Sequence record: MW879341.1
Length of the DNA: 64,000 nt
Strand: one strand, 5' to 3'
Shown: in pieces, positions 685-30,371 of the stretch
How positions within the stretch are numbered: the stretch's first letter is position 1
How the letters are laid out: the number at the start of each line of letters is the position of its first letter
The notes under the pieces: model-generated
Databases searched by the model: none
Told to the model about the DNA's origin: nothing
Seen by the model: the letters and a program-made list of their open reading frames with translations, nothing else
Program-made: the position numbers and the translations under genes

Positions 685-1989
685 ATGCAGTACAAATCCC
701 TGTTAAACATTAGTGCGGAGAGTCTGGTTCAAGAGACTGTCCTGCCTGAAGGTCGTGTCCCACTGGCACCTACTGACGTTGCGTATAACGAAGACGGTAG
801 TGTGGTTCTTCGTACTGACGAAGATCTGGCTGTTTCTCAAGAAGCTATTGCGTCTCTGGCAACCATCTACCACAAACTGACAAACATCAAATTCTCCATG
901 CGTGCAAATGCTGCGTATGGACCGTTGTCTAAAGTTTCAGTAGAAGCGTACGACAGTGCAATCAACCATGTACTGCGTAACACAGGCTTACGTGATCTGA
1001 TGGTATCGGTCGAAGGATTTGAATACGACCACGATTCATCCCTCACGTATTCTGAAGAAGGTATTAAAGATGCCTTGCAGAAGATCATCGATAAGATCGT
1101 TGAGCTGATCAAAGGTTGGTTCACCAAAGCTGAGAACTATGCTGAGAAAATCCTCGCAGGTACGGCTGACCTGAAGCCGCGTGCTCAGGCGTTGCGTGAC
1201 GCCATTCGTGGTTGGGGTCCTAAAGAACCTAAAGTAGCCGAGATCGACATCAGCGGTGGTGAAGCGGCGTGGATTACCTACAAAGGTACACCTAACTTGC
1301 TCTATGCTTCTGGCATTGCGGCGGGTACTTGTCAGAAAACTATCGCCGGCCTGCCGAGTGACTGCGTGATGTACGTTAACAAACTGACTGACGTACTGCG
1401 TGGTTGGACTCGCGACCCTAACAGTTACAATCCAGACAACCCGTTTGAAGACAACAAATTCTTCCCACGTCTGCCGGAGACTAATCCGAAAACGATGGTT
1501 AGCGAGCAGTGGTCTATCGGACCGTATCAGTTGGGCTATACCGAACACAACCACCTGAAGACCGCAAGCTTTACTGAGCGTGAAGGTTTTGAGATGGGTG
1601 ACGGTACTACTCTGAAAGTACTGACGCCTGGCGAATTGTCTAACGTCGTAGCATCTTTTGTGACCATTTTCGGTATCACAGAAAACATCAACGACATCGG
1701 TAAGAAAGCAACTGATGCGCTGAAAAGCTTCGGCAAGTCCATCGAAGATCTGGCCAACATCGAGGCGGATGACGACTCTAAAGTAGATGACATGCGTGCC
1801 TCTGCTATGGAGGCGTGGGAATCCGTACGTAGCTTCTCACAACTCCCACTGGCTGTCGAAGGTAAGGTACTTCAGGTGGCTCGCGCGGCGATTGCTGTTG
1901 CTGAGCGTATGGTAGAAGCATACGGCGAGAAGCCGGCCGAATCAACTGAGGAGAACGCAAGTGGCGAGGATTCTAAGCCTTCAGTCTAA
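685..1989 (+). CDS. phiKZ-like internal head protein (phiKZ_IP-type paralogue)
   Basis: 434 aa. N-terminal region has SAE/SQE/SVE/SEE motifs followed by the amphipathic helix EGIKDALQKIIDKIVELIKGWF typical of this family. Confidence 0.75.
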   Translation: MQYKSLLNISAESLVQETVLPEGRVPLAPTDVAYNEDGSVVLRTDEDLAVSQEAIASLATIYHKLTNIKFSMRANAAYGPLSKVSVEAYDSAINHVLRNTGLRDLMVSVEGFEYDHDSSLTYSEEGIKDALQKIIDKIVELIKGWFTKAENYAEKILAGTADLKPRAQALRDAIRGWGPKEPKVAEIDISGGEAAWITYKGTPNLLYASGIAAGTCQKTIAGLPSDCVMYVNKLTDVLRGWTRDPNSYNPDNPFEDNKFFPRLPETNPKTMVSEQWSIGPYQLGYTEHNHLKTASFTEREGFEMGDGTTLKVLTPGELSNVVASFVTIFGITENINDIGKKATDALKSFGKSIEDLANIEADDDSKVDDMRASAMEAWESVRSFSQLPLAVEGKVLQVARAAIAVAERMVEAYGEKPAESTEENASGEDSKPSV

Positions 1990-18897: not shown

Positions 18898-19407
18898 GTG
18901 ATGCAGAGAGTGTTCATTGTTGGAGACGGACATGTCTCACACAAAAACATCTGTAAACAACGACCACAGTTCAGCTCCGTAGCTGAGCACGACGAATTTT
19001 TCTGGGACTTACTCTCTCCTTTAACTAAGAGAGACCAGTTGATCATGGCGGGCGATATGTTCTTCACCCGTGAGTCCCTGTATAAACTCCGTAAGTTCCC
19101 GTTCCGCAAGATTTTAGTAATGGGTAATCATTGTACCGACCACGAACCGGATTTCCGTGACTTGGTTGAGGTGTACGATGATATCCATGAATCCATCAAG
19201 AAGAACTGGTTTACAATAACCCACCGACCAATGCACCCAGCAGCGTTGCGTAAACGTATTAACGTACACGCACACCAACACGGCGATACATTACCAGACT
19301 CACGGTATATCAACGTGTCGTTAGAAGCTACTGGATTCCGACTGGTTGACTTTGAGGAAATTCGTAGCGGTGACTACCGAACACATGCTTCTGCATCTAA
19401 GTTTTAA
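18898..19407 (+). CDS. Calcineurin-like metallophosphoesterase (phage type)
   Basis: Motifs GDGHVSH, AGDM, MGNH, THRP and HAHQH, and C-terminal YINVSLE. Confidence 0.85.
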   Translation: MMQRVFIVGDGHVSHKNICKQRPQFSSVAEHDEFFWDLLSPLTKRDQLIMAGDMFFTRESLYKLRKFPFRKILVMGNHCTDHEPDFRDLVEVYDDIHESIKKNWFTITHRPMHPAALRKRINVHAHQHGDTLPDSRYINVSLEATGFRLVDFEEIRSGDYRTHASASKF

Positions 19408-21669: not shown

Positions 21670-21861
21670 ATGCGTTGTGTATTATGCCATAAAGCGAAAG
21701 AGATGAATAAATTTGATCCGGTGGAGTGGGGTGAGTGCGCTCCTGTCTGCCATACGTGCAACGATAGTCCTCCAACGGCAAAGTTATCAACTGTGACTTT
21801 GTGTTGGGTGATTATTCTAGTACTTGTATCCATTGCGTTTACGATTAAGGACTACCAGTGA
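21670..21861 (+). CDS. Small membrane protein with a Zn-finger-like CxxC..CxxC motif
   Basis: CVLCH ... CAPVCHTC followed by a C-terminal hydrophobic helix; GGAGA RBS; overlaps DHFR (GTGA). Confidence 0.6.
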   Translation: MRCVLCHKAKEMNKFDPVEWGECAPVCHTCNDSPPTAKLSTVTLCWVIILVLVSIAFTIKDYQ

Positions 21862-22367
21862 TTAAAGCTATTATCGCCGTCGAATTACACAGCCGTGGTA
21901 TCGGTATCAATAACCAGTTACCGTGGCGTATTCCGTCTGACCTGAAACACTTCAAAGAAACAACGATGGGTGATTCGGTGTTGATGGGTTATAACACCAT
22001 GCTTTCGTTGGGCAAACCGTTACCGGGTCGTACCAACTACGTCTTGACACGTTTCAAAGAACCTAACTTACCGGAAGGGTTCGTAGGTGTTCAGATGGTT
22101 CAGGGTCTTCGTGATTTCTTTGCCCTCGTTGGCAAGCGTGAAGACCTCTGGGTTATCGGCGGTGCTAAGACTTACGAGATCTGCGCGCCGTATATTAAAG
22201 AGTGGGTAATTACCTGGGTAGATGCTCCGGGCGTTGCGGTGGATTGCGTGTGGGATGATTCTGTCCTGCAAGAGTTCGTACCTATGGGGAACCTCCCAAT
22301 TGCACCGAGTGAGAAAGATGAACACTCGTACCAGATCACCCAATACCAACGCCGTACCGACAAATAA
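21858..22367 (+). CDS. folA: Dihydrofolate reductase
   Basis: Canonical motifs GIGINNQLPW, DLKHFKETT, MGYNT, PLPGRTNYVLT and IGGAKTY. Confidence 0.97.
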   Translation: MIKAIIAVELHSRGIGINNQLPWRIPSDLKHFKETTMGDSVLMGYNTMLSLGKPLPGRTNYVLTRFKEPNLPEGFVGVQMVQGLRDFFALVGKREDLWVIGGAKTYEICAPYIKEWVITWVDAPGVAVDCVWDDSVLQEFVPMGNLPIAPSEKDEHSYQITQYQRRTDK

Positions 22368-22893: not shown

Positions 22894-24654
22894 ATGAACG
22901 TACAAGATATCCAAATCGCAGGCGTTATCGCCACCACCGCTGATGGTAAGATCGTTGACCGTGAGTTATTCAAGGGTCTGACCTGGGAAGGTAAGTTCTA
23001 CGAGTCAGTTGAGCCGGTTCAGATCATCAGCGCACAGAACATCATTCGTGTGGTACTCAACGACGAATGCAATGAAATCGTCAGCGCCGATTTGATCATT
23101 GGCATGACGCCAATCCCCAACCCAAATCATGAAGAACCCAAAGACATCACCGTCGAGTTCACGACTCTCCAGGAGTGGTCGCCTGACGTAGAAGCCGTTC
23201 GTACGCAAATCGAGCGTATGACTCGTCGTGGTGACCCTCGTGTGTCCAGTGGGATGGACCCTAAGGTATTGTTGGATGCTGAGATTGAACGCTTGGGTCG
23301 ACTCAACGCACACAAGTCGGATGTTGGGATTACATTCAACCTCCCACACGGCGGTCAACAATTGACGATGACTCAACCTAAGTCACGTTACCCGCATCGA
23401 TTGTCTGGACTGATGACCGACGAGGAAGGTCCGCTGAATCTGGACCTGGAAGCACACTTCGCTAGTTGGAAGTTTGACCCAACTGCCGGTAGTGACCAAC
23501 TGGATGCTCCAAAGGGTCGTGTACTGGAAGACGCAGAAATCGACTTCGTTGTTCCGTTAAGTAATAGTCGGTTGATGATTGCTCCAAACTCTGCGATGGT
23601 TTGCGACAAAGTCATTCCGGTTCTACAGTCGATCGAAAGCTCACCTAAAGAACCAAAGAACTATCTGATTGTCAACATCGCTAAAGACGACACTAAGTAC
23701 TGCGGGTATATCCTGAGGTCGGTAGTGTTGGGTGACATTATTCACAACGTGAACATTATCCCAGAGTTGCCCGCTAACACCCAATGGTTGTCTGGTGACG
23801 AGCATAAGAAAATTGTGTTCCGTCCAATGCCTTACTTGTCTACGATTTATGATGACAAGTCAATCAACAGCATCCTGCGTAATGTCAACTCAGTGTTTTT
23901 AGCTACCAACGTTGATTTGGTGTTGTGCACGTATCAGGGTCGGGTGTTGTACGGCGACTCAGCGATGGAGTTGTGCGGTGTACCGGTTCGTGTACTCGAT
24001 CCCGATGACTTCATTCCGTCGCACCGTTCAAACGTACTGTTCCTGGACTACGATAGTTATCCAGGCGTACCGACTCGTGCAACGCTCTGCCCGAATGCTG
24101 AGCTTACACCAGAGGGTGTGAATCGTAGTGAGTTCGGTGGAGACATCGCCGTCCCAATCGACCAGTTAAACCTGACGTCAAACTTCGCTAAGTATCCTGC
24201 TGCACACAAAGGCGGCGATGATCTTGATGAAGTCTTGGCTAACGTTACCTCGACGGAACCACTCGTTGTCGCACCTACCGTTACCGGCAGTAAGTCAGTT
24301 TACTATGTTGCAGTACACGGCGGTGAAATCGTGATGGCTGACCCTAATACTGCCGACGTGGTGGCTATGGGTAAGTTGCTTGTTGTTAACTCTCACAAGG
24401 ACGCACCTGAAGGGCTGGTTGATGTCGTGCTGGGTGAGTACGACACTATCCCAGGTAGACCTTCAGCGGTTTACCGTGCTAACGATGTAGACCTGAAAGA
24501 ACTACTGGCTACTGGACAGATTACTATTCCGATGATTGCACGGAGTAGTAGCGGGTTCGATATTCCAGGTATCCGTTTCAAGACTTACCTGCCTTACGCC
24601 ATTGCTATTGACCACAACGAGTTCCAGTATCCTCGTTTCAACTTAACTAAATAA
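22894..24654 (+). CDS. Hypothetical protein, probably multi-domain
   Basis: 586 aa, GAGGT RBS; no motif recognised. Confidence 0.75.
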   Translation: MNVQDIQIAGVIATTADGKIVDRELFKGLTWEGKFYESVEPVQIISAQNIIRVVLNDECNEIVSADLIIGMTPIPNPNHEEPKDITVEFTTLQEWSPDVEAVRTQIERMTRRGDPRVSSGMDPKVLLDAEIERLGRLNAHKSDVGITFNLPHGGQQLTMTQPKSRYPHRLSGLMTDEEGPLNLDLEAHFASWKFDPTAGSDQLDAPKGRVLEDAEIDFVVPLSNSRLMIAPNSAMVCDKVIPVLQSIESSPKEPKNYLIVNIAKDDTKYCGYILRSVVLGDIIHNVNIIPELPANTQWLSGDEHKKIVFRPMPYLSTIYDDKSINSILRNVNSVFLATNVDLVLCTYQGRVLYGDSAMELCGVPVRVLDPDDFIPSHRSNVLFLDYDSYPGVPTRATLCPNAELTPEGVNRSEFGGDIAVPIDQLNLTSNFAKYPAAHKGGDDLDEVLANVTSTEPLVVAPTVTGSKSVYYVAVHGGEIVMADPNTADVVAMGKLLVVNSHKDAPEGLVDVVLGEYDTIPGRPSAVYRANDVDLKELLATGQITIPMIARSSSGFDIPGIRFKTYLPYAIAIDHNEFQYPRFNLTK

Positions 24655-24663
24655 GGTTTGAAG

Positions 24664-25074
24664 ATGATTGATGTATTAGTTCGTGTATTGATGGATAAGA
24701 ACGTAGCTTATCTGTCAGAACAAAATGCCTGCGACACCGCGTTGTTGGAAAAGCTCCATGATGACATTCTGGGTCTGGTAAACAACACTGCCATTCCAGT
24801 TAGTTGCTACGAGACTGGACACACCGATGGTGTTGTTGAGTTTAACTTCGGCACCCACACCGTTCAACTGCAACCAGCACAAGGCGAACATAAACGCCGC
24901 CTGATTATTCAGTATGGCGAAGGTACTGTTGCTCGTGATGGTACACGCACTGGCAGTTTAGTGACGCGTAAGATCATTGAGTGGTTAGATCTGAAGACGA
25001 CGTACGGTGGTGAGCATCGTCTGAACGTGGATATCACTGGTACCAAGCTCCGCATCGAAATTACATTCAACTAA
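24664..25074 (+). CDS. Hypothetical protein
   Basis: About 136 aa, AAGG RBS, followed by a terminator. Confidence 0.7.
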   Translation: MIDVLVRVLMDKNVAYLSEQNACDTALLEKLHDDILGLVNNTAIPVSCYETGHTDGVVEFNFGTHTVQLQPAQGEHKRRLIIQYGEGTVARDGTRTGSLVTRKIIEWLDLKTTYGGEHRLNVDITGTKLRIEITFN

Positions 25075-25080
25075 GCATCG

Positions 25081-25113
25081 CCTCCTTACCTTCGGGTAAG
25101 GAGGTTTTATGCC
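25081..25113 (+). terminator. Hairpin terminator identical to 585..617
   Basis: 33/33 nt identity: CCTCCTTACCTTCGGGTAAGGAGGTTTTATGCC. Confidence 0.85.
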
Positions 25114-25155
25114 TTTTTTCTTTTTTGTTCGATTTTATGACAGAGGAGAATAAAG

Positions 25156-25704
25156 ATGCCAGCATCAATACCGTTGGTGACCACCCACATAAACCGTGAG
25201 TTGGTTGCCTACTACGCCAAACAAACACAGTTACTAAATGCCATTGACGAATGGGTATTGGTGCCTGATTACAAACTACTACCTGAGCTAGTCAGACTCA
25301 GACATCTCGTAAATAAGCATCAACCACACCGTGACGCTAAGACGGTTCTGTATCGTGGGTTCACCGTAGGGGCTAACTATCAGAACGATTTGAAGGTAGA
25401 CCTGAAAGGGAAATACAACGACCTGAAAAGACCTATCGGCGTAACGTTTGATCATCCGACTAGCTTTACGACAGAGAAAAGTATTGCCGAGACGTTTGGC
25501 GATACAGTGATCAGTATCCGACCTGGAGCACACCTCAATAAGTTCTTACGACTTACTGATGAACTCTGTCTGGCTATCTGTGAACATCGAAAGATTGATC
25601 CAGAGACACAATGTGAATGGATCTTCTTACCCTACGAACCAACTGAGTTCATGACGACATTTATACGTCATGAGAAACCGAAGTGGTATGAATTCTGGAA
25701 GTAA
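25156..25704 (+). CDS. Putative ADP-ribosyltransferase (R-S-E clade)
   Basis: VLYRGF, TSFTT..IAETFG and QCEWIFLP occur in the canonical order; GAGGAG RBS; stand-alone transcription unit. Confidence 0.65.
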   Translation: MPASIPLVTTHINRELVAYYAKQTQLLNAIDEWVLVPDYKLLPELVRLRHLVNKHQPHRDAKTVLYRGFTVGANYQNDLKVDLKGKYNDLKRPIGVTFDHPTSFTTEKSIAETFGDTVISIRPGAHLNKFLRLTDELCLAICEHRKIDPETQCEWIFLPYEPTEFMTTFIRHEKPKWYEFWK

Positions 25705-25748
25705 GGCATAAAAGGCTACTCACCCGACCCTCCGGTCTGGGTGAGTAG
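25705..25748 (-). terminator. Hairpin between convergent genes; TTTTATGCC tail on the minus strand
   Basis: GGCATAAAA followed by CTACTCACCCGACC-loop-GGTCTGGGTGAGTAG. Confidence 0.75.
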
Positions 25749-25845
25749 TGGGTATAATACCCTATGCATCAATGTGATACTACAATGGATTTGGTTGTGC
25801 TAGTGAACGGTAGTCTTTACTGCTTATATCGGTTGACTGATTCGG

Positions 25846-27408
25846 TTAGGCTGCGAAGTCCATCCAGCCATTGCCCCCACCTTGCGAGTTAGCGTTGCCG
25901 CCCACTTTCCTACGAGACATGTCTGGACCACCGACATCTTCTGGAATACCCAATGCAGGGTGGAACTTGTACACACAATACAGATCTTCTTCCTTCGTAA
26001 TACCCACCTTACGGTGTTTACCACGCTGGATAGTAAGGAACGATTCGCCGTCGACTTTCTCAATGTGGATTAACAGTTCCAGGTCGACTTCTTGGTCGAT
26101 GACACGACAGCCATCCCAATAACCTTTGTTAGCAATTTCTTTAACAAAGGACTCAGTACCATTACGCAGTAGGTTCTTAGCTTCAGAGCTGATCTGGTGC
26201 GGTGTGATAACTGTGATGCCACGCGGGTTACAGTAGTTACGTACACGACGGAACAAGTCACGCACGTCCGTACCCGTAGCACCGGTGACGCAGCCTTCTT
26301 TCGACATCATGTTCAGGTAGTCGATAGTCAGCAAGTGAATCTCATAACCCTGAGATTCATATTTGTTCAGCAGGTTAAAGAGTTTCTGGTAGTTGAACAT
26401 ACTTGGGTTCACACGGAGCATAGTCACGGTGTAGCCAGTACGTTCCAGATGCACTTTAACATACGATGCAATTTCAGCATAGAACTCTGGATTGTTCTTG
26501 GCGTCTTCTGCCAGCTGGGTAATCTCCAGCTTCTGTCCAGTCTCCTGCGCTTTCAATGTCACGTACAGTTGAATCACGTTATCTTTAACGGAGTTCTCTG
26601 TACTGATGTGTAAGATCATCGGCTTCTTAGTTGGATCACGCATGTATGGCGTTGCGTTCATCGCAATCTGACGAGTCAGGTCTAAGGTAAAGCCCGTTTT
26701 AAAGTTGTGCTGTAGTGCGCCAACAACAATAAAGTCACCACGACGGAAACCACCGTACTCACCCATCATTCGGTTGAGTCCTTGCCAACGAGTTTGCATA
26801 ATCCCGTCAGCACCAGACTCTTCTAAACCACGACGGATTGCGTCTGTCAGTGTCGAAACGTCAGAAGTATTAATCTCATCAACGATAGCGGCGTCAGCAG
26901 CTTCAAAACGTTGGCCAGTAAATGGTTCAAGCTCACCTTTAAATTCCGACATAAAGGAAGCCCAATCAATTGACTCTTCTTCGAAAGCCAATCGACTACT
27001 ATACTTCTTCACAACGCCCTTGATATCCTCACGCTCTTTATAAGCATAGAGGTCATTGCGGTGTTCTGAACACTGCGCTTTGATCGTCTCAGGAGTCTCT
27101 TCTAAACCTAGACCTTCTTCAATGGCAGTGAATAAACCTTCCTCAGCAGAGACGTTCACACGCAATCTTTGCAGTAAAGATGTTTTATCGTATGTATGTG
27201 TGTGGGATTGTTCCGTCATCCACGCCGCTGTTGACTTCATTCCGTTCAATGCATCTGTACTCGACTCGGTACCAAAACCGTTGTCGATGTTTTTCATACG
27301 ACCCAGGATTTCCTTAACCAGGCTCGCTGAGTTATCTACGGGGTTTTGCACGCGCGATTCCCAATAGAGTAACATGATGCATTTGAACAATACGAGTTTA
27401 GTATCCAT
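25846..27408 (-). CDS. dnaB: Replicative DnaB-like helicase (phiKZ gp118 type)
   Basis: GGFRRGDFIVVGALQHNFKT (variant Walker A), LHISTEN, LLTIDYL (Walker B), TPHQIS and QRGKHR; divergent from the capsid gene as in phiKZ-like phages. Confidence 0.9.
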   Translation of the reverse strand: MDTKLVLFKCIMLLYWESRVQNPVDNSASLVKEILGRMKNIDNGFGTESSTDALNGMKSTAAWMTEQSHTHTYDKTSLLQRLRVNVSAEEGLFTAIEEGLGLEETPETIKAQCSEHRNDLYAYKEREDIKGVVKKYSSRLAFEEESIDWASFMSEFKGELEPFTGQRFEAADAAIVDEINTSDVSTLTDAIRRGLEESGADGIMQTRWQGLNRMMGEYGGFRRGDFIVVGALQHNFKTGFTLDLTRQIAMNATPYMRDPTKKPMILHISTENSVKDNVIQLYVTLKAQETGQKLEITQLAEDAKNNPEFYAEIASYVKVHLERTGYTVTMLRVNPSMFNYQKLFNLLNKYESQGYEIHLLTIDYLNMMSKEGCVTGATGTDVRDLFRRVRNYCNPRGITVITPHQISSEAKNLLRNGTESFVKEIANKGYWDGCRVIDQEVDLELLIHIEKVDGESFLTIQRGKHRKVGITKEEDLYCVYKFHPALGIPEDVGGPDMSRRKVGGNANSQGGGNGWMDFAA

Positions 27409-28091: not shown

Positions 28092-30371
28092 ATGGGTAAG
28101 CTTCTTGATACCAAAACCCGCAGCTCCCTGAGTGACGCGGTAAGCGAAGTTAATAGCCACCTGAAAGCTCAGGGTGTTGGCGTATTCTCTGCTGGCCTGG
28201 CTGGCAAAGTTGCATCTATGGAATCCCTGGGTGACGCAGATCTGAACGAACTGCGCGACATTGCCAAAGGTGCGACCGTATCTGTAGAAAGCATGCTGGG
28301 TCACATGGGTCTGACCGCTAAAGGTACCGGCCACGAATATCTTGCTGAGCGCCGCGACCAGGCTTCTCGTGAAGCTGCATCCATCGTGATGATGGCTCAG
28401 GGTGACCCGGTTGGTTATCAGCAGAAAGCTCTGTCTGTCGGCGTTGAAGATTTCAAAGACGCTTCTCAGGGCCGTAAAGTTGCAGTACTGGGCGAAGGCG
28501 CATACGGCAACATGCAGTATGGCGAATCTGCTAAGTTCGGTCTGGAGTCTTACGACGAAAACGAACTGCGTAAGCACATCGCATTCTCTACCGTATTTGC
28601 TGCGGCAACTGCGCGTCAGGCTGACTTCGCTGAAGCCTTCCTGCCAACCTACGTGGTTTCACCAGAGCAGATCGGTACCGACGTTCGCGTCCGCCGTAAC
28701 ATGGTTCTGAACCGTAAACTGCACCCGATCACCGGCAAGCCGATGGATCTGGAAAAGATCAACCTGCTGGAAGCCTTCCGTAACCACGAGATTCTGTCAA
28801 ACGAATCTACTCTGCTGGTTCCGGTATACCGCGATGAGTCTAAAGACAACTTCGTCGATACCGCGAAAGTGAAAGTGACCACCAAACAGGTTGACGGCGT
28901 TGACGTTGAAACCGCACCACTGGTCTTCGGTAAAACCATCGACCTGCTGGGCGTGTCTCAGAACGACCAGCTTCTGAAAGCCGGTATCGTTGACAACACC
29001 GATGCAATCGACGCCTACACTCGTCTGGATAACATCTTCCTGGCAGTTGGCGATTCAATCGTTTCCTTCAACGTGCGTCGCTCTCCGCGTGCCGGTGCTG
29101 TGAAATCGGTAGAAGGCGATAGCCGTGAGATGAACTTCCAGTTCACCACTCAGGACCTGCTGCTGACTGCTGAAACTAAAGACGTTGACGGTGCCGCTGT
29201 TGCTGGCCTGGCAGCTCTGGGTAAACTGCGTCTGCGCGTGCAGCTGGACATCACCGGCCGCATGAACGTCGAATACGGTAATATCAACCTGAATCCTTCC
29301 AGCCTGGAAGTGGTTGCCGTGTTCAACGAACAGAACGAAGCTATCTCTCTGAACGATGCTTCAGCTAAAGCCATCATCGATGCGCTGAAACTGTCTGCAT
29401 TCGGTTACGAGCTGTTCGCTCGTCGTAACAACGCCAACCGTCGTAACCAAGGTCTGCTGGTTGACGTTACTGAGTTCGCAGAGCGTTACACTGTTCCGAT
29501 CAGTTCTCCACTGAGCACCGTTGCTCCGCTGGCTACTGACAAGTCTGCTAAAGATCTGCAAGCGCTGATCAACGCAGCCAACATCCGTACCAACAACAAC
29601 GCAGTGACCCTGATCCTGAACTATGCAGATGACCTGCAACGCGCTACCCAGACCAGCTTCTTCAAGTCTTCACTGACTTCAGTTCCTGGTATCGGTCGCC
29701 TGCTGGTAGAACCGACCTTCAAATACCTGAAGATCGATCTGGCGAAAGAAGTGAACTCCGTACAGTCTGCACAACGTGCTGCTGACATCCAGGGTGCACT
29801 GGTAACTCCAATCCGCAACATGGCTTACGAGCTGGTGCGTGATTCAAACTACCAGGCTGCGCTGGACGCGGATTCCGAAGGTCGCTCTGAGCGTCCACAC
29901 CTGGTTGTAGGTACCGACATCGTAACCCAGCAGTTCCTGATGGTTACCGGTGACGACCGCACCCTGTCCATCGGCATGGATCACACCATCGTTGCGTCTC
30001 CGGACAAACGTATGGTTGGCAAGATCGTGCTGGCGTTCGTGCGTAAAGGTACCACTGAGCCAGATGCTCTGAGCTTCGGTGCTCACATCTACATCCCAGA
30101 GCTGAGCTCTGTTGTTCCAGTAAACCGTTTCGGCGAGACTTCTCGTGAAACCATGATCCAGATGCGTAACCTGCAAATCACCAACCTGCCGGTAATGGGT
30201 CTGATCGAAGTGGTTAACCTGGATGTTGCAACTGCGACCCGCACTGAGCTGGACGTTAACTCTAAGCCTGTTAAATCCGACGCCGGCAACGGTGGCGATA
30301 ACGGTGGTGACAACGGCGGCGATAATGGCGGCGACAACGGTGGCAGCAACGGCGGTACCGACGGTAAGTGA
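28092..30371 (+). CDS. Major capsid protein (phiKZ gp120/SPN3US gp75 type)
   Basis: About 759 aa with the strongest codon bias in the window. N-terminal propeptide with SME/SVE/GVE/GLESY sites, FAEAFLPT, FGAHIYIPEL. ATG 28092 follows AAGGA. Confidence 0.9.
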   Translation: MGKLLDTKTRSSLSDAVSEVNSHLKAQGVGVFSAGLAGKVASMESLGDADLNELRDIAKGATVSVESMLGHMGLTAKGTGHEYLAERRDQASREAASIVMMAQGDPVGYQQKALSVGVEDFKDASQGRKVAVLGEGAYGNMQYGESAKFGLESYDENELRKHIAFSTVFAAATARQADFAEAFLPTYVVSPEQIGTDVRVRRNMVLNRKLHPITGKPMDLEKINLLEAFRNHEILSNESTLLVPVYRDESKDNFVDTAKVKVTTKQVDGVDVETAPLVFGKTIDLLGVSQNDQLLKAGIVDNTDAIDAYTRLDNIFLAVGDSIVSFNVRRSPRAGAVKSVEGDSREMNFQFTTQDLLLTAETKDVDGAAVAGLAALGKLRLRVQLDITGRMNVEYGNINLNPSSLEVVAVFNEQNEAISLNDASAKAIIDALKLSAFGYELFARRNNANRRNQGLLVDVTEFAERYTVPISSPLSTVAPLATDKSAKDLQALINAANIRTNNNAVTLILNYADDLQRATQTSFFKSSLTSVPGIGRLLVEPTFKYLKIDLAKEVNSVQSAQRAADIQGALVTPIRNMAYELVRDSNYQAALDADSEGRSERPHLVVGTDIVTQQFLMVTGDDRTLSIGMDHTIVASPDKRMVGKIVLAFVRKGTTEPDALSFGAHIYIPELSSVVPVNRFGETSRETMIQMRNLQITNLPVMGLIEVVNLDVATATRTELDVNSKPVKSDAGNGGDNGGDNGGDNGGDNGGSNGGTDGK
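30288..30359 (+). repeat. Six 12-bp units encoding (NGGD/S/T) at the MCP C-terminus
   Basis: AACGGTGGCGAT AACGGTGGTGAC AACGGCGGCGAT AATGGCGGCGAC AACGGTGGCAGC AACGGCGGTACC. Confidence 0.9.

Follow-up and report, generated by a model that had tools for sequence, protein, structure and literature searches.

Phage T4 encodes small mono-ADP-ribosyltransferases (ARTs) of the R-S-E class, ModA, ModB and Alt (Alt-VIP2, R-S-E-2 clade; Mod_ADP_RT, PF26816), which carry an ExE motif and target the host RNA polymerase at its alpha subunit. Compact R-S-E ARTs are also found in Tre1 (a type VI secretion system toxin; 6drh/6dre) and in the Listeria ART-ARH toxin (8za7), both of which are paired with an immunity protein of ADP-ribosylhydrolase (ARH) type. 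Among phages, ARTs are carried by over 40% of jumbo phages (PMC9503650) and are said to be commonest in the jumbo-phage groups without an RNA polymerase of their own (PMC7824862). ART domains also occur in the large multi-domain polyvalent proteins, where they were described as H-Y-D enzymes, and R-S-E enzymes of the Alt/VIP2 type were not found (Iyer et al. 2017). Here we analysed a stretch of 64,000 nucleotides (the window) that contains, at positions 25156-25704 on the plus strand, a gene for a 182-residue protein labelled as hypothetical. A preliminary description made from the sequence alone had read the gene as a stand-alone R-S-E ART with a QxE motif, whose target might be a nucleic acid. 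From our comparisons the protein is very probably a member of the R-S-E ART superfamily that stands outside every curated family searched.

In a megablast search the region 24600-26000 was 100% identical, at equal coordinates, to Erwinia phage pEa_SNUABM_54 (MW879341.1; 272,635 bp; host Erwinia amylovora), and the window thus corresponds to the initial 64 kb of this record. pEa_SNUABM_54 is a phiKZ-type jumbo phage and encodes an RNA polymerase beta fragment of the multisubunit type (PF00562). The product of the open reading frame (ORF) 25156-25704, called the window protein below, was identical to QXO10853.1 of this phage.

Family members and conserved residues

A word-index search returned only four relatives at about 50% identity, in which all three of the motifs LYRGF, TSFTT and QCEWIFLP were invariant. 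When 1.84 billion representative proteins were searched with the profile, 138 relatives came out; 86 had E<=1e-10, and most are 170-230 amino acids (aa) long. All residue counts refer to an alignment of 117 of these 138 relatives, which are 19-50% identical to the window protein. The features of the gene were as follows.

25156..25704, plus strand: coding sequence with ATG start, 182 aa, predicted R-S-E ART (QXO10853.1; GenBank label 'hypothetical protein')
25195..25320, plus strand: N-terminal three-helix lobe, residues 14-55, with DxWxLxPD, from the secondary structure of the AlphaFold2 (AF2) model; W33 in 111/117, D38 in 91/117
25348..25362, plus strand: LYRGF, residues 65-69, on strand beta-1, with R67 as the predicted NAD-binding Arg; R67 and G68 in 117/117
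25459..25473, plus strand: TSFTT, residues 102-106, the S-x-T/S ('STS') motif on a beta strand, with S103 as the predicted Ser; S103 in 113/117, T/S105 in 116/117
25561..25563, plus strand: E136 (in T-D-E), where helix 135-145 begins; this acidic residue is specific to the family and nearly invariant; 110/117
25594..25617, plus strand: equivalent of the ARTT (ADP-ribosylating toxin turn-turn) loop, I147-D-P-E-T-Q-C-E154, with Pro149 at the third (aromatic) position, Q152 at the specificity position and E154 as the predicted catalytic Glu
25609-25632, plus strand: QCEWIFLP, residues 152-159; E154 in 114/117, P159 in 102/117, Q152 in 81/117

The three motifs thus lay in the ART order that had been noticed beforehand, and their R, S and E were conserved in the 117 relatives. 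Since R67, S103 and E154 were near-invariant across proteins this divergent, the motif words are not a chance co-occurrence, and at the level of the alignment the conservation pattern is as predicted for a catalytic R-S-E triad. Outside the triad W33, A111, G115 and E136 were each kept in 109-116 of the relatives. The least conserved motif residue was Q152 (69%), which was replaced by Tyr in 12 and by Glu in 8 members, and Leu, Arg and Phe occurred as well. At position 149 the family had P, L, I, F, A or V, mostly non-aromatic.

Predicted structure

The AF2 model calculated with the 117-sequence alignment reached a predicted local distance difference test (pLDDT) score of 93.3 and a predicted template modelling (pTM) score of 0.88. 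It replaced a run with five close homologues that was unusable (pLDDT 54). The model showed the three-helix N-terminal lobe (14-55) followed by a beta-rich core. An aromatic-R-G was located on strand beta-1 (Y66-R67-G68, strand 65-69), an S-x-S/T on a core strand (S103-F-T105, strand 102-105) and a Glu where the ARTT loop ends, E154, which opens strand 154-157.

The model was compared with 48,161 PDB chains by VIA-align, a search independent of Foldseek. Nearly all rows down to about rank 36 were ARTs, aligned over residues 10-178 approximately. The Z-scores were 7.2 for the Listeria ART toxin (8za7_B, 132 residues), 7.0 for Vis, 6.9 for C3stau2, 6.8 for C3bot2, 6.7 for both ExoS and the iota-like CPILE-a, 6.6 for VIP2 and 6.4 for ART2.2, and SpvB, HopU1 and Tre1 were further matches. 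In Foldseek the top matches to the PDB were also nearly all ARTs, and these were weak (best E 0.15). When the top Foldseek chains were re-aligned, ExoT was obtained with a Z of 7.8, 100 chains had a Z of at least 5, and all 50 of the 50 rows listed were ARTs. Searching the ESM Atlas by structure placed a DRAT cluster first, with a template modelling (TM) score of 0.62, and searching it by language-model features returned ADPrib_exo_Tox and Mod_ADP_RT clusters; weaker matches in BFVD and the Atlas included Mod-type ADP-ribosylases. Aligned to the structures of C3, ExoS and iota toxin, the model matched from residues 4-16 onwards, so that the N-terminal lobe was covered.

The comparison with ART folds, which the preliminary description had proposed as a check, therefore came out in favour of an ART: the predicted model contains the split beta-sheet of the fold, with Z up to 7.8. 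Judged from this model, we consider it very likely that the window protein has an ART fold.

Comparison with known ADP-ribosyltransferases

DraT, the dinitrogenase reductase ADP-ribosyltransferase, was the nearest curated sequence family. The Pfam family DRAT (PF07357) matched residues 58-122 of the window protein with an E of 0.013 and 15.2 bits, against a cut-off of 25. It was also matched, below threshold, by 15/117 members at E<=0.01, and no other Pfam family recurred. The DRAT profile differs in having about 165 positions before the Arg motif, where the window protein has 57 residues. The biological setting is different too, and a DraG-type hydrolase partner was not found in pEa_SNUABM_54.

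The T4 enzymes are likewise small phage-encoded R-S-E mono-ARTs. By hhalign, the family profile matched T4 ModB with 89.9% probability (E 1.7e-6, 82 columns); LYRG and SFTT of the family were paired with LYRG and SFTT of ModB, and the alignment ended before the catalytic Glu. The comparison with T4 ModA was not significant (13.8% probability). With T4 Alt the family shares virion association in at least one member (RP31 ORF124, see below). In contrast to the T4 Mod/Alt enzymes, the window protein had no match to Pfam PF26816 and its family has QxE.

The best matches among solved structures were C3, ExoS/ExoT, Vis and iota/VIP2 (Z 6.6-7.8, 125-143 residues aligned). They share with the window protein the order R / S-x-T / Q-or-E-x-E and the hydrophobic-L-P after the Glu, whereas identity was 6-16%, the window protein has Pro149 in place of the ARTT aromatic residue, and the conserved T-D-E helix (135-145) is an addition of the window family. 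Tre1 and the 8za7 toxin were similar in size (Z 7.0-7.2, 16% identity); the ARH-type immunity protein that comes with these toxins was not found in pEa_SNUABM_54.

The remaining sequence searches gave little. ADPrib_exo_Tox (PF03496), the Pfam family of the C3, ExoS/ExoT, Vis and iota/VIP2 enzymes, had no match at E<=1, neither in the window protein nor in the phage record, and the NCBIfam and PADLOC scans of the protein gave no match. PHROGs assigned it to phrog_29772, 'unknown function'. A sequence search of the PDB with the single protein and with the profile returned nothing meaningful, the best match being 37 residues around LYRG in 2kxi (E 0.044). Conservation, predicted fold and profile comparison together support the identification as an R-S-E ART that had been proposed from the motifs.

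Proposed function

We considered an active, macromolecule-modifying ART that is made in the infected cell to be the best explanation, with a probability of about 0.62. Our inference on catalysis, on timing, on the class of acceptor and on the biological role runs as follows. The gene would give a small, catalytically competent, NAD+-dependent mono-ART of the R-S-E class, whose N-terminal three-helix lobe would form the NAD+ cleft together with the split beta-sheet core. In this cleft the phosphates and ribose of NAD+ would be bound by R67 and S103 and the oxocarbenium intermediate stabilised by E154, while placing the acceptor would fall to the loop 147-154, which contains Q152. The substrate would be a protein of the host, or with lower probability one of the phage, modified in favour of the infection, and a role in host takeover or counter-defence is plausible.

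Since the window protein lacks an N-terminal leader and its gene has its own terminator/TATG cassette (see below), the protein is most likely made inside the infected cell. Synthesis and action in the cell are more likely than an injection as seen with T4 Alt. An effector context is supported by the multi-domain fusions of other family members, by the position of one relative (P0010) among inner-body genes and by the presence of RP31 ORF124 in virions.

Several observations weigh against this explanation. The loop lacks the ARTT aromatic residue, no curated family model reached its cut-off for the window protein, the Foldseek E-values against the PDB were above 0.1, and a Z of 7-7.8 counts as no more than middling in the calibration of the tool and is not decisive alone. 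The ART call is made up of many weak matches that agree with motif order and conservation, and there is no single strong match among them. Moreover, the virion evidence and the leaders come from other clades than that of the window protein. We found the ART call convincing because the matches were uniform, covered almost the whole protein and followed a motif order that equals the strand order.

Gene surroundings and transcription signals

The signals and genes around the ART gene were as follows.

25080..25105, plus strand: GC-rich hairpin with a T-rich tail that runs to about 25126, serving the gene block upstream as its intrinsic terminator; -23.6 kcal/mol, z -6.36, 0/200 shuffles as stable
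25108-25111, plus strand: TATG inside the terminator tail, from the sequence
25136..25139, plus strand: second copy of TATG, within TTTTATG and 17 nt before the start codon, candidate phiKZ-type late promoter/start site (non-virion RNA polymerase)
25143..25148, plus strand: Shine-Dalgarno-like GAGGAG, 8 nt 5' of the ATG, from the sequence
25715..25749, unstranded: hairpin between the convergent ART and helicase genes; -31.2 kcal/mol on the plus strand, -32.1 kcal/mol on the minus strand
21858-22367, plus strand: dihydrofolate reductase (DHFR), annotated 'hypothetical' (PF00186, E 3.8e-33)
25846..27408, minus strand: divergent DnaB-like replicative helicase, convergent neighbour of the ART gene, annotated hypothetical (PF20307, E 3.5e-127; phrog_3213)
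28092-30371, plus strand: PhiKZ-type major capsid protein, 759 aa, annotated 'hypothetical' (PF25620, E 8.8e-182)

The terminator hairpins were established by folding, as a consensus terminator scan missed both through its tail rule. The gene had been described as bounded by terminators. This was right for the upstream side, where the hairpin is canonical, and did not stand for the downstream side: the canonical U-tail (TTTTATGCC) of the hairpin 25715-25749 was present on the minus strand only, so that this hairpin terminates the helicase gene and could serve the ART gene, at best, as a stop without a tail. The TATG reported upstream was found in two copies, and the notion of a stand-alone gene with its own transcription unit is reasonable.

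In phiKZ, TATG with the G as +1 is the core of the late promoters used by the non-virion RNA polymerase (PMC4666361). In the window the word TTTTATGNC was found 9 times against 1.9 expected, and 6/9 sites lay directly 3' of GC-rich hairpins; the word is therefore a terminator tail first of all in pEa_SNUABM_54. A fixed terminator tail, TTTTATGCC, followed directly after GC-rich hairpins at 609, 5827, 22393, 25105, 25713 (minus strand) and 30551. The TATG inside this shared tail is identical to the core of the phiKZ late promoters, and a stop signal may thus overlap with a start signal.

The hairpin of 25080-25105 with its TTTTATGCC occurred again at 585-617. It is part of a cassette of about 60 nt that is near-identical at 585-645 and 25081-25141 and consists of a hairpin (10-bp stem, TTCG loop) and TTTTATGCC, followed by a T-rich stretch that leads to TTTTATG. 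Each copy sits just upstream of a gene, at 685..1989 and 25156..25704 respectively. The cassette looks like a duplicated terminator-plus-promoter module. Late transcription of the ART gene is a possibility on this reading, a 4-mer being weak as evidence.

A 138-aa ORF (24658-25074, plus strand) is located directly upstream of the ART gene, with the terminator between both, and had no family match. Further upstream a 168-aa ORF (18901-19407, plus strand) gave a weak, sub-threshold match to calcineurin-like phosphoesterases (PF00149, E 0.0023).

N-terminal leaders and virion packaging

N-terminal extensions of at least 20 residues were present in 49/117 members. Of these extended members 29 contained [SAG]-x-E, compared to 14.9 +/- 3.0 in shuffles. 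The form [AG]-[LMFH]-E was found at residues 8-22 in 20/49, compared to 2.4 +/- 1.5 in shuffled sequences (maximum 7), and Ser was often the next residue. The prohead protease of phage SPN3US cleaves at an A-x-E site with Ser in P1' and removes short propeptides of 20-24 residues (PMC10052503), and on sequence the leader motif of the family matches this site. In RP12 ORF127 the leader ends in G-L-G-L-E at residue 17, and RTH11 has S-M-E at 7-9. SPN3US gp225, a 22-kDa head protein with a 24-residue propeptide, was considered as a family member and ruled out, SPN3US being without a profile match.

RP31 ORF124, the orthologue of RP12 ORF127, matched the family profile with 99.85% probability (E 1e-30) over a region spanning R, S and E. 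This protein is in the list of purified RP31 virions analysed by LC-MS/MS (liquid chromatography coupled to tandem mass spectrometry), with 'Unknown' function, 24.5 kDa, 2 unique peptides and 8.5% coverage (Matsui et al. 2017, Table S3). From this listing and from the leaders in the family we concluded that one family clade is virion cargo.

The window enzyme itself might then be deployed like T4 Alt, that is made late, packaged in the capsid, injected with the DNA and active as soon as the next infection begins, in its first minutes. We regard this as possible but rather unlikely for the window protein. Besides RP31 ORF124 and the leader site, it is favoured by P0010 lying within an inner-body gene cluster, by the late-type TATG, by the distance of only 2.4 kb between the ART gene and the major capsid gene, and by SPN3US, where most head proteins are uncleaved, so that a protein without a leader may still be packaged (PMC10052503). 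Against it, neither a leader nor an A-x-E site was found near the N-terminus of the window protein or of its clade (P0002-P0008, SXP01). In a quick maximum-likelihood tree the leader-bearing proteins formed mainly two clades, one of them with a Shimodaira-Hasegawa-like approximate likelihood ratio test (SH-aLRT) support of 100 and including RP12 and RTH11, and the window protein was placed in a separate leaderless clade together with P0002-P0008. Furthermore, the neighbours of the window gene are DHFR, genes without identity and the convergent replicative helicase rather than head genes, with the capsid gene following after them, and the TATG is a 4-mer that is also part of the terminator tail.

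Distribution, gene contexts and fusions

Among isolated phages, tblastn detected relatives in jumbo phages only: Shewanella SXP01, Vibrio BONAISHI (ORF48), Klebsiella Eowyn, Xanthomonas RTH11 and Ralstonia RP12/RP31. The closest of them was SXP01 (PV593634.1, about 257097-257663), with 39% identity in an unannotated 188-aa ORF. Four genes labelled 'virion structural protein', together with an endolysin gene, immediately precede this ORF (L002 3947-4513). The family profile found no copy in phiKZ, 201phi2-1 or SPN3US and a single copy, with no second member, in the pEa_SNUABM_54 record; the gene is therefore a patchy accessory gene. A pattern search of viral and genome contigs for related loci gave pattern matches and no true relatives. 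As far as seen in these sequences, the family is restricted to phiKZ-like jumbo phages; look-alike clusters in the ESM Atlas bear 'Bacteria' labels.

The gene contexts and fusions of relatives were as follows.

L005, closest metagenomic relative: same order as in the window, with small ORF, ART, convergent divDNAB helicase, 180-aa ORF and PhiKZ capsid protein
Other relatives: ART gene adjoining ribonucleotide reductase (RNR), DHFR, thymidylate synthase or endolysin genes
P0010: ART gene between PhiKZ_gp91 and three phiKZ inner-body protein genes
P0069 (1370 aa; L011 5001-9113): fusion of DUF5662, GNAT, the family ART domain and then ResIII/SNF2
P0078 (L012 5001-7421): fusion of the family ART domain with a SUKH immunity-type domain
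P0098: fusion of the family ART domain with a ParB-like nuclease domain
P0132: fusion of the family ART domain with DUF5662

The convergent helicase is a conserved neighbour of the ART gene in close relatives, as seen in L005. The counterpart of the upstream 138-aa ORF in L005 is 145 aa long and has the same position. In BONAISHI, ORF49c has the same convergent position and a size similar to the helicase gene and is annotated 'RNA binding protein'; it may be the same helicase. The contigs of P0069 and P0078 both carry Clp protease genes, and that of P0078 also contains a gene for Peptidase_S80, the phiKZ-type prohead protease.

With an ART domain inside large multi-domain phage proteins, the fusions resemble ART-PolyVal / Tox-ART-HYD2 (Iyer et al. 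2017). They differ in the active site, which is H-Y-D there and R / S / E in the window family, and the fused copies retain R, S and E. The fusions thus add R-S-E ARTs to polyvalent-type proteins, beyond the H-Y-D ARTs described in 2017.

Acceptor of the reaction

The ARTT loop has been described as X-X-aromatic-X-X-E/Q-X-E, in which the aromatic residue binds the substrate; in ScARP, Trp159 stacks on guanine (PMC7827354). At the sixth position C3 (acceptor Asn) and ScARP (guanine) have a Gln, which hydrogen-bonds the Asn or the guanine, and iota toxin (Arg) has a Glu (PMC7827354). In the window protein the Q-x-E part of the loop fits this rule and the aromatic position (Pro149) does not. With the aromatic residue missing, substrate handling may differ from that of the textbook enzymes.

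The family occurs in three formats, as a leaderless and presumably cytoplasmic enzyme, as head cargo that would be processed by a protease and as a domain of giant multi-effector proteins, and its acceptor loop is unusual in having no aromatic residue, a variable Q/Y/E/L position and the extra conserved T-D-E helix. A family of R-S-E ARTs of nucleus-forming phages with these traits might reflect a new acceptor chemistry or diversifying host immune targets, in which case the ART of the window would serve counter-defence and modify a residue other than Arg or an acceptor that is not a protein. We consider this broader reading improbable.

More specifically, the preliminary description had taken QxE as the mark of a non-Arg acceptor, possibly a nucleic acid, so that the enzyme would ADP-ribosylate DNA or RNA like pierisin, Scabin and ScARP. 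The window protein does have QxE (Q152-x-E154) in common with these enzymes, Gln is the majority residue of the family (69%), and the Gln contacts in C3 and ScARP would suit such an acceptor. The guanine-stacking aromatic residue (Trp) is missing, however, being replaced by Pro149 in the window protein and non-aromatic in most members, and many of them carry Y, E, L, R or F in place of Q152; RTH11 has ExE and RP12 has FxE. The isoelectric point (pI) of the window protein is about 7.8, with a family median of 7.9, which also speaks against a nucleic-acid acceptor. In VIA-align the ARTs that target DNA or RNA (Scabin Z 4.3, TreX 4.5, TreTu 3.7) ranked below the protein-targeting ARTs (6.6-7.8), though fold rank does not fix the acceptor. 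We concluded that a nucleic-acid acceptor is very unlikely, and this part of the earlier description was not supported.

That the ART fold makes no transfer to a macromolecule, the protein being an NAD+ glycohydrolase, an enzyme that modifies small molecules or a binding protein without catalysis, is very unlikely: the ART superfamily includes some NADases (PMC9503650), neither an eraser (Macro or ARH) nor an obvious partner was found in pEa_SNUABM_54, and the non-canonical ARTT loop would fit, but the near-invariance of R, S and E across 19-50% identity argues for catalysis, virion packaging and multi-effector fusions suit a host-modifying enzyme better than an NAD+ drain, and NAD+ depletion would harm the phage too.

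Conclusions

An ART in a jumbo phage is a known and expected kind of gene, and the family itself is new. Its signatures are DxWxLxPD in the helical lobe, the conserved T-D-E helix and the non-aromatic ARTT loop. The family has been without annotation, being hypothetical in GenBank, of unknown function in PHROGs and absent from Pfam, NCBIfam and PADLOC. Our searches of papers found no description of it; these did not extend to the supplementary lists of the Aravind-lab surveys, and a prior computational notice is possible.

About 140 sequence clusters gain a testable function from the assignment. RP31 ORF124, a virion protein so far unexplained, becomes a family member and ties the family to injected effectors. 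Nucleus-building jumbo phages have their own RNA polymerases and do not need the T4-style ADP-ribosylation of the host RNA polymerase. The presence of the ART family in such phages therefore points to another target, and our guess is that this would be a protein of host defence, translation or division.

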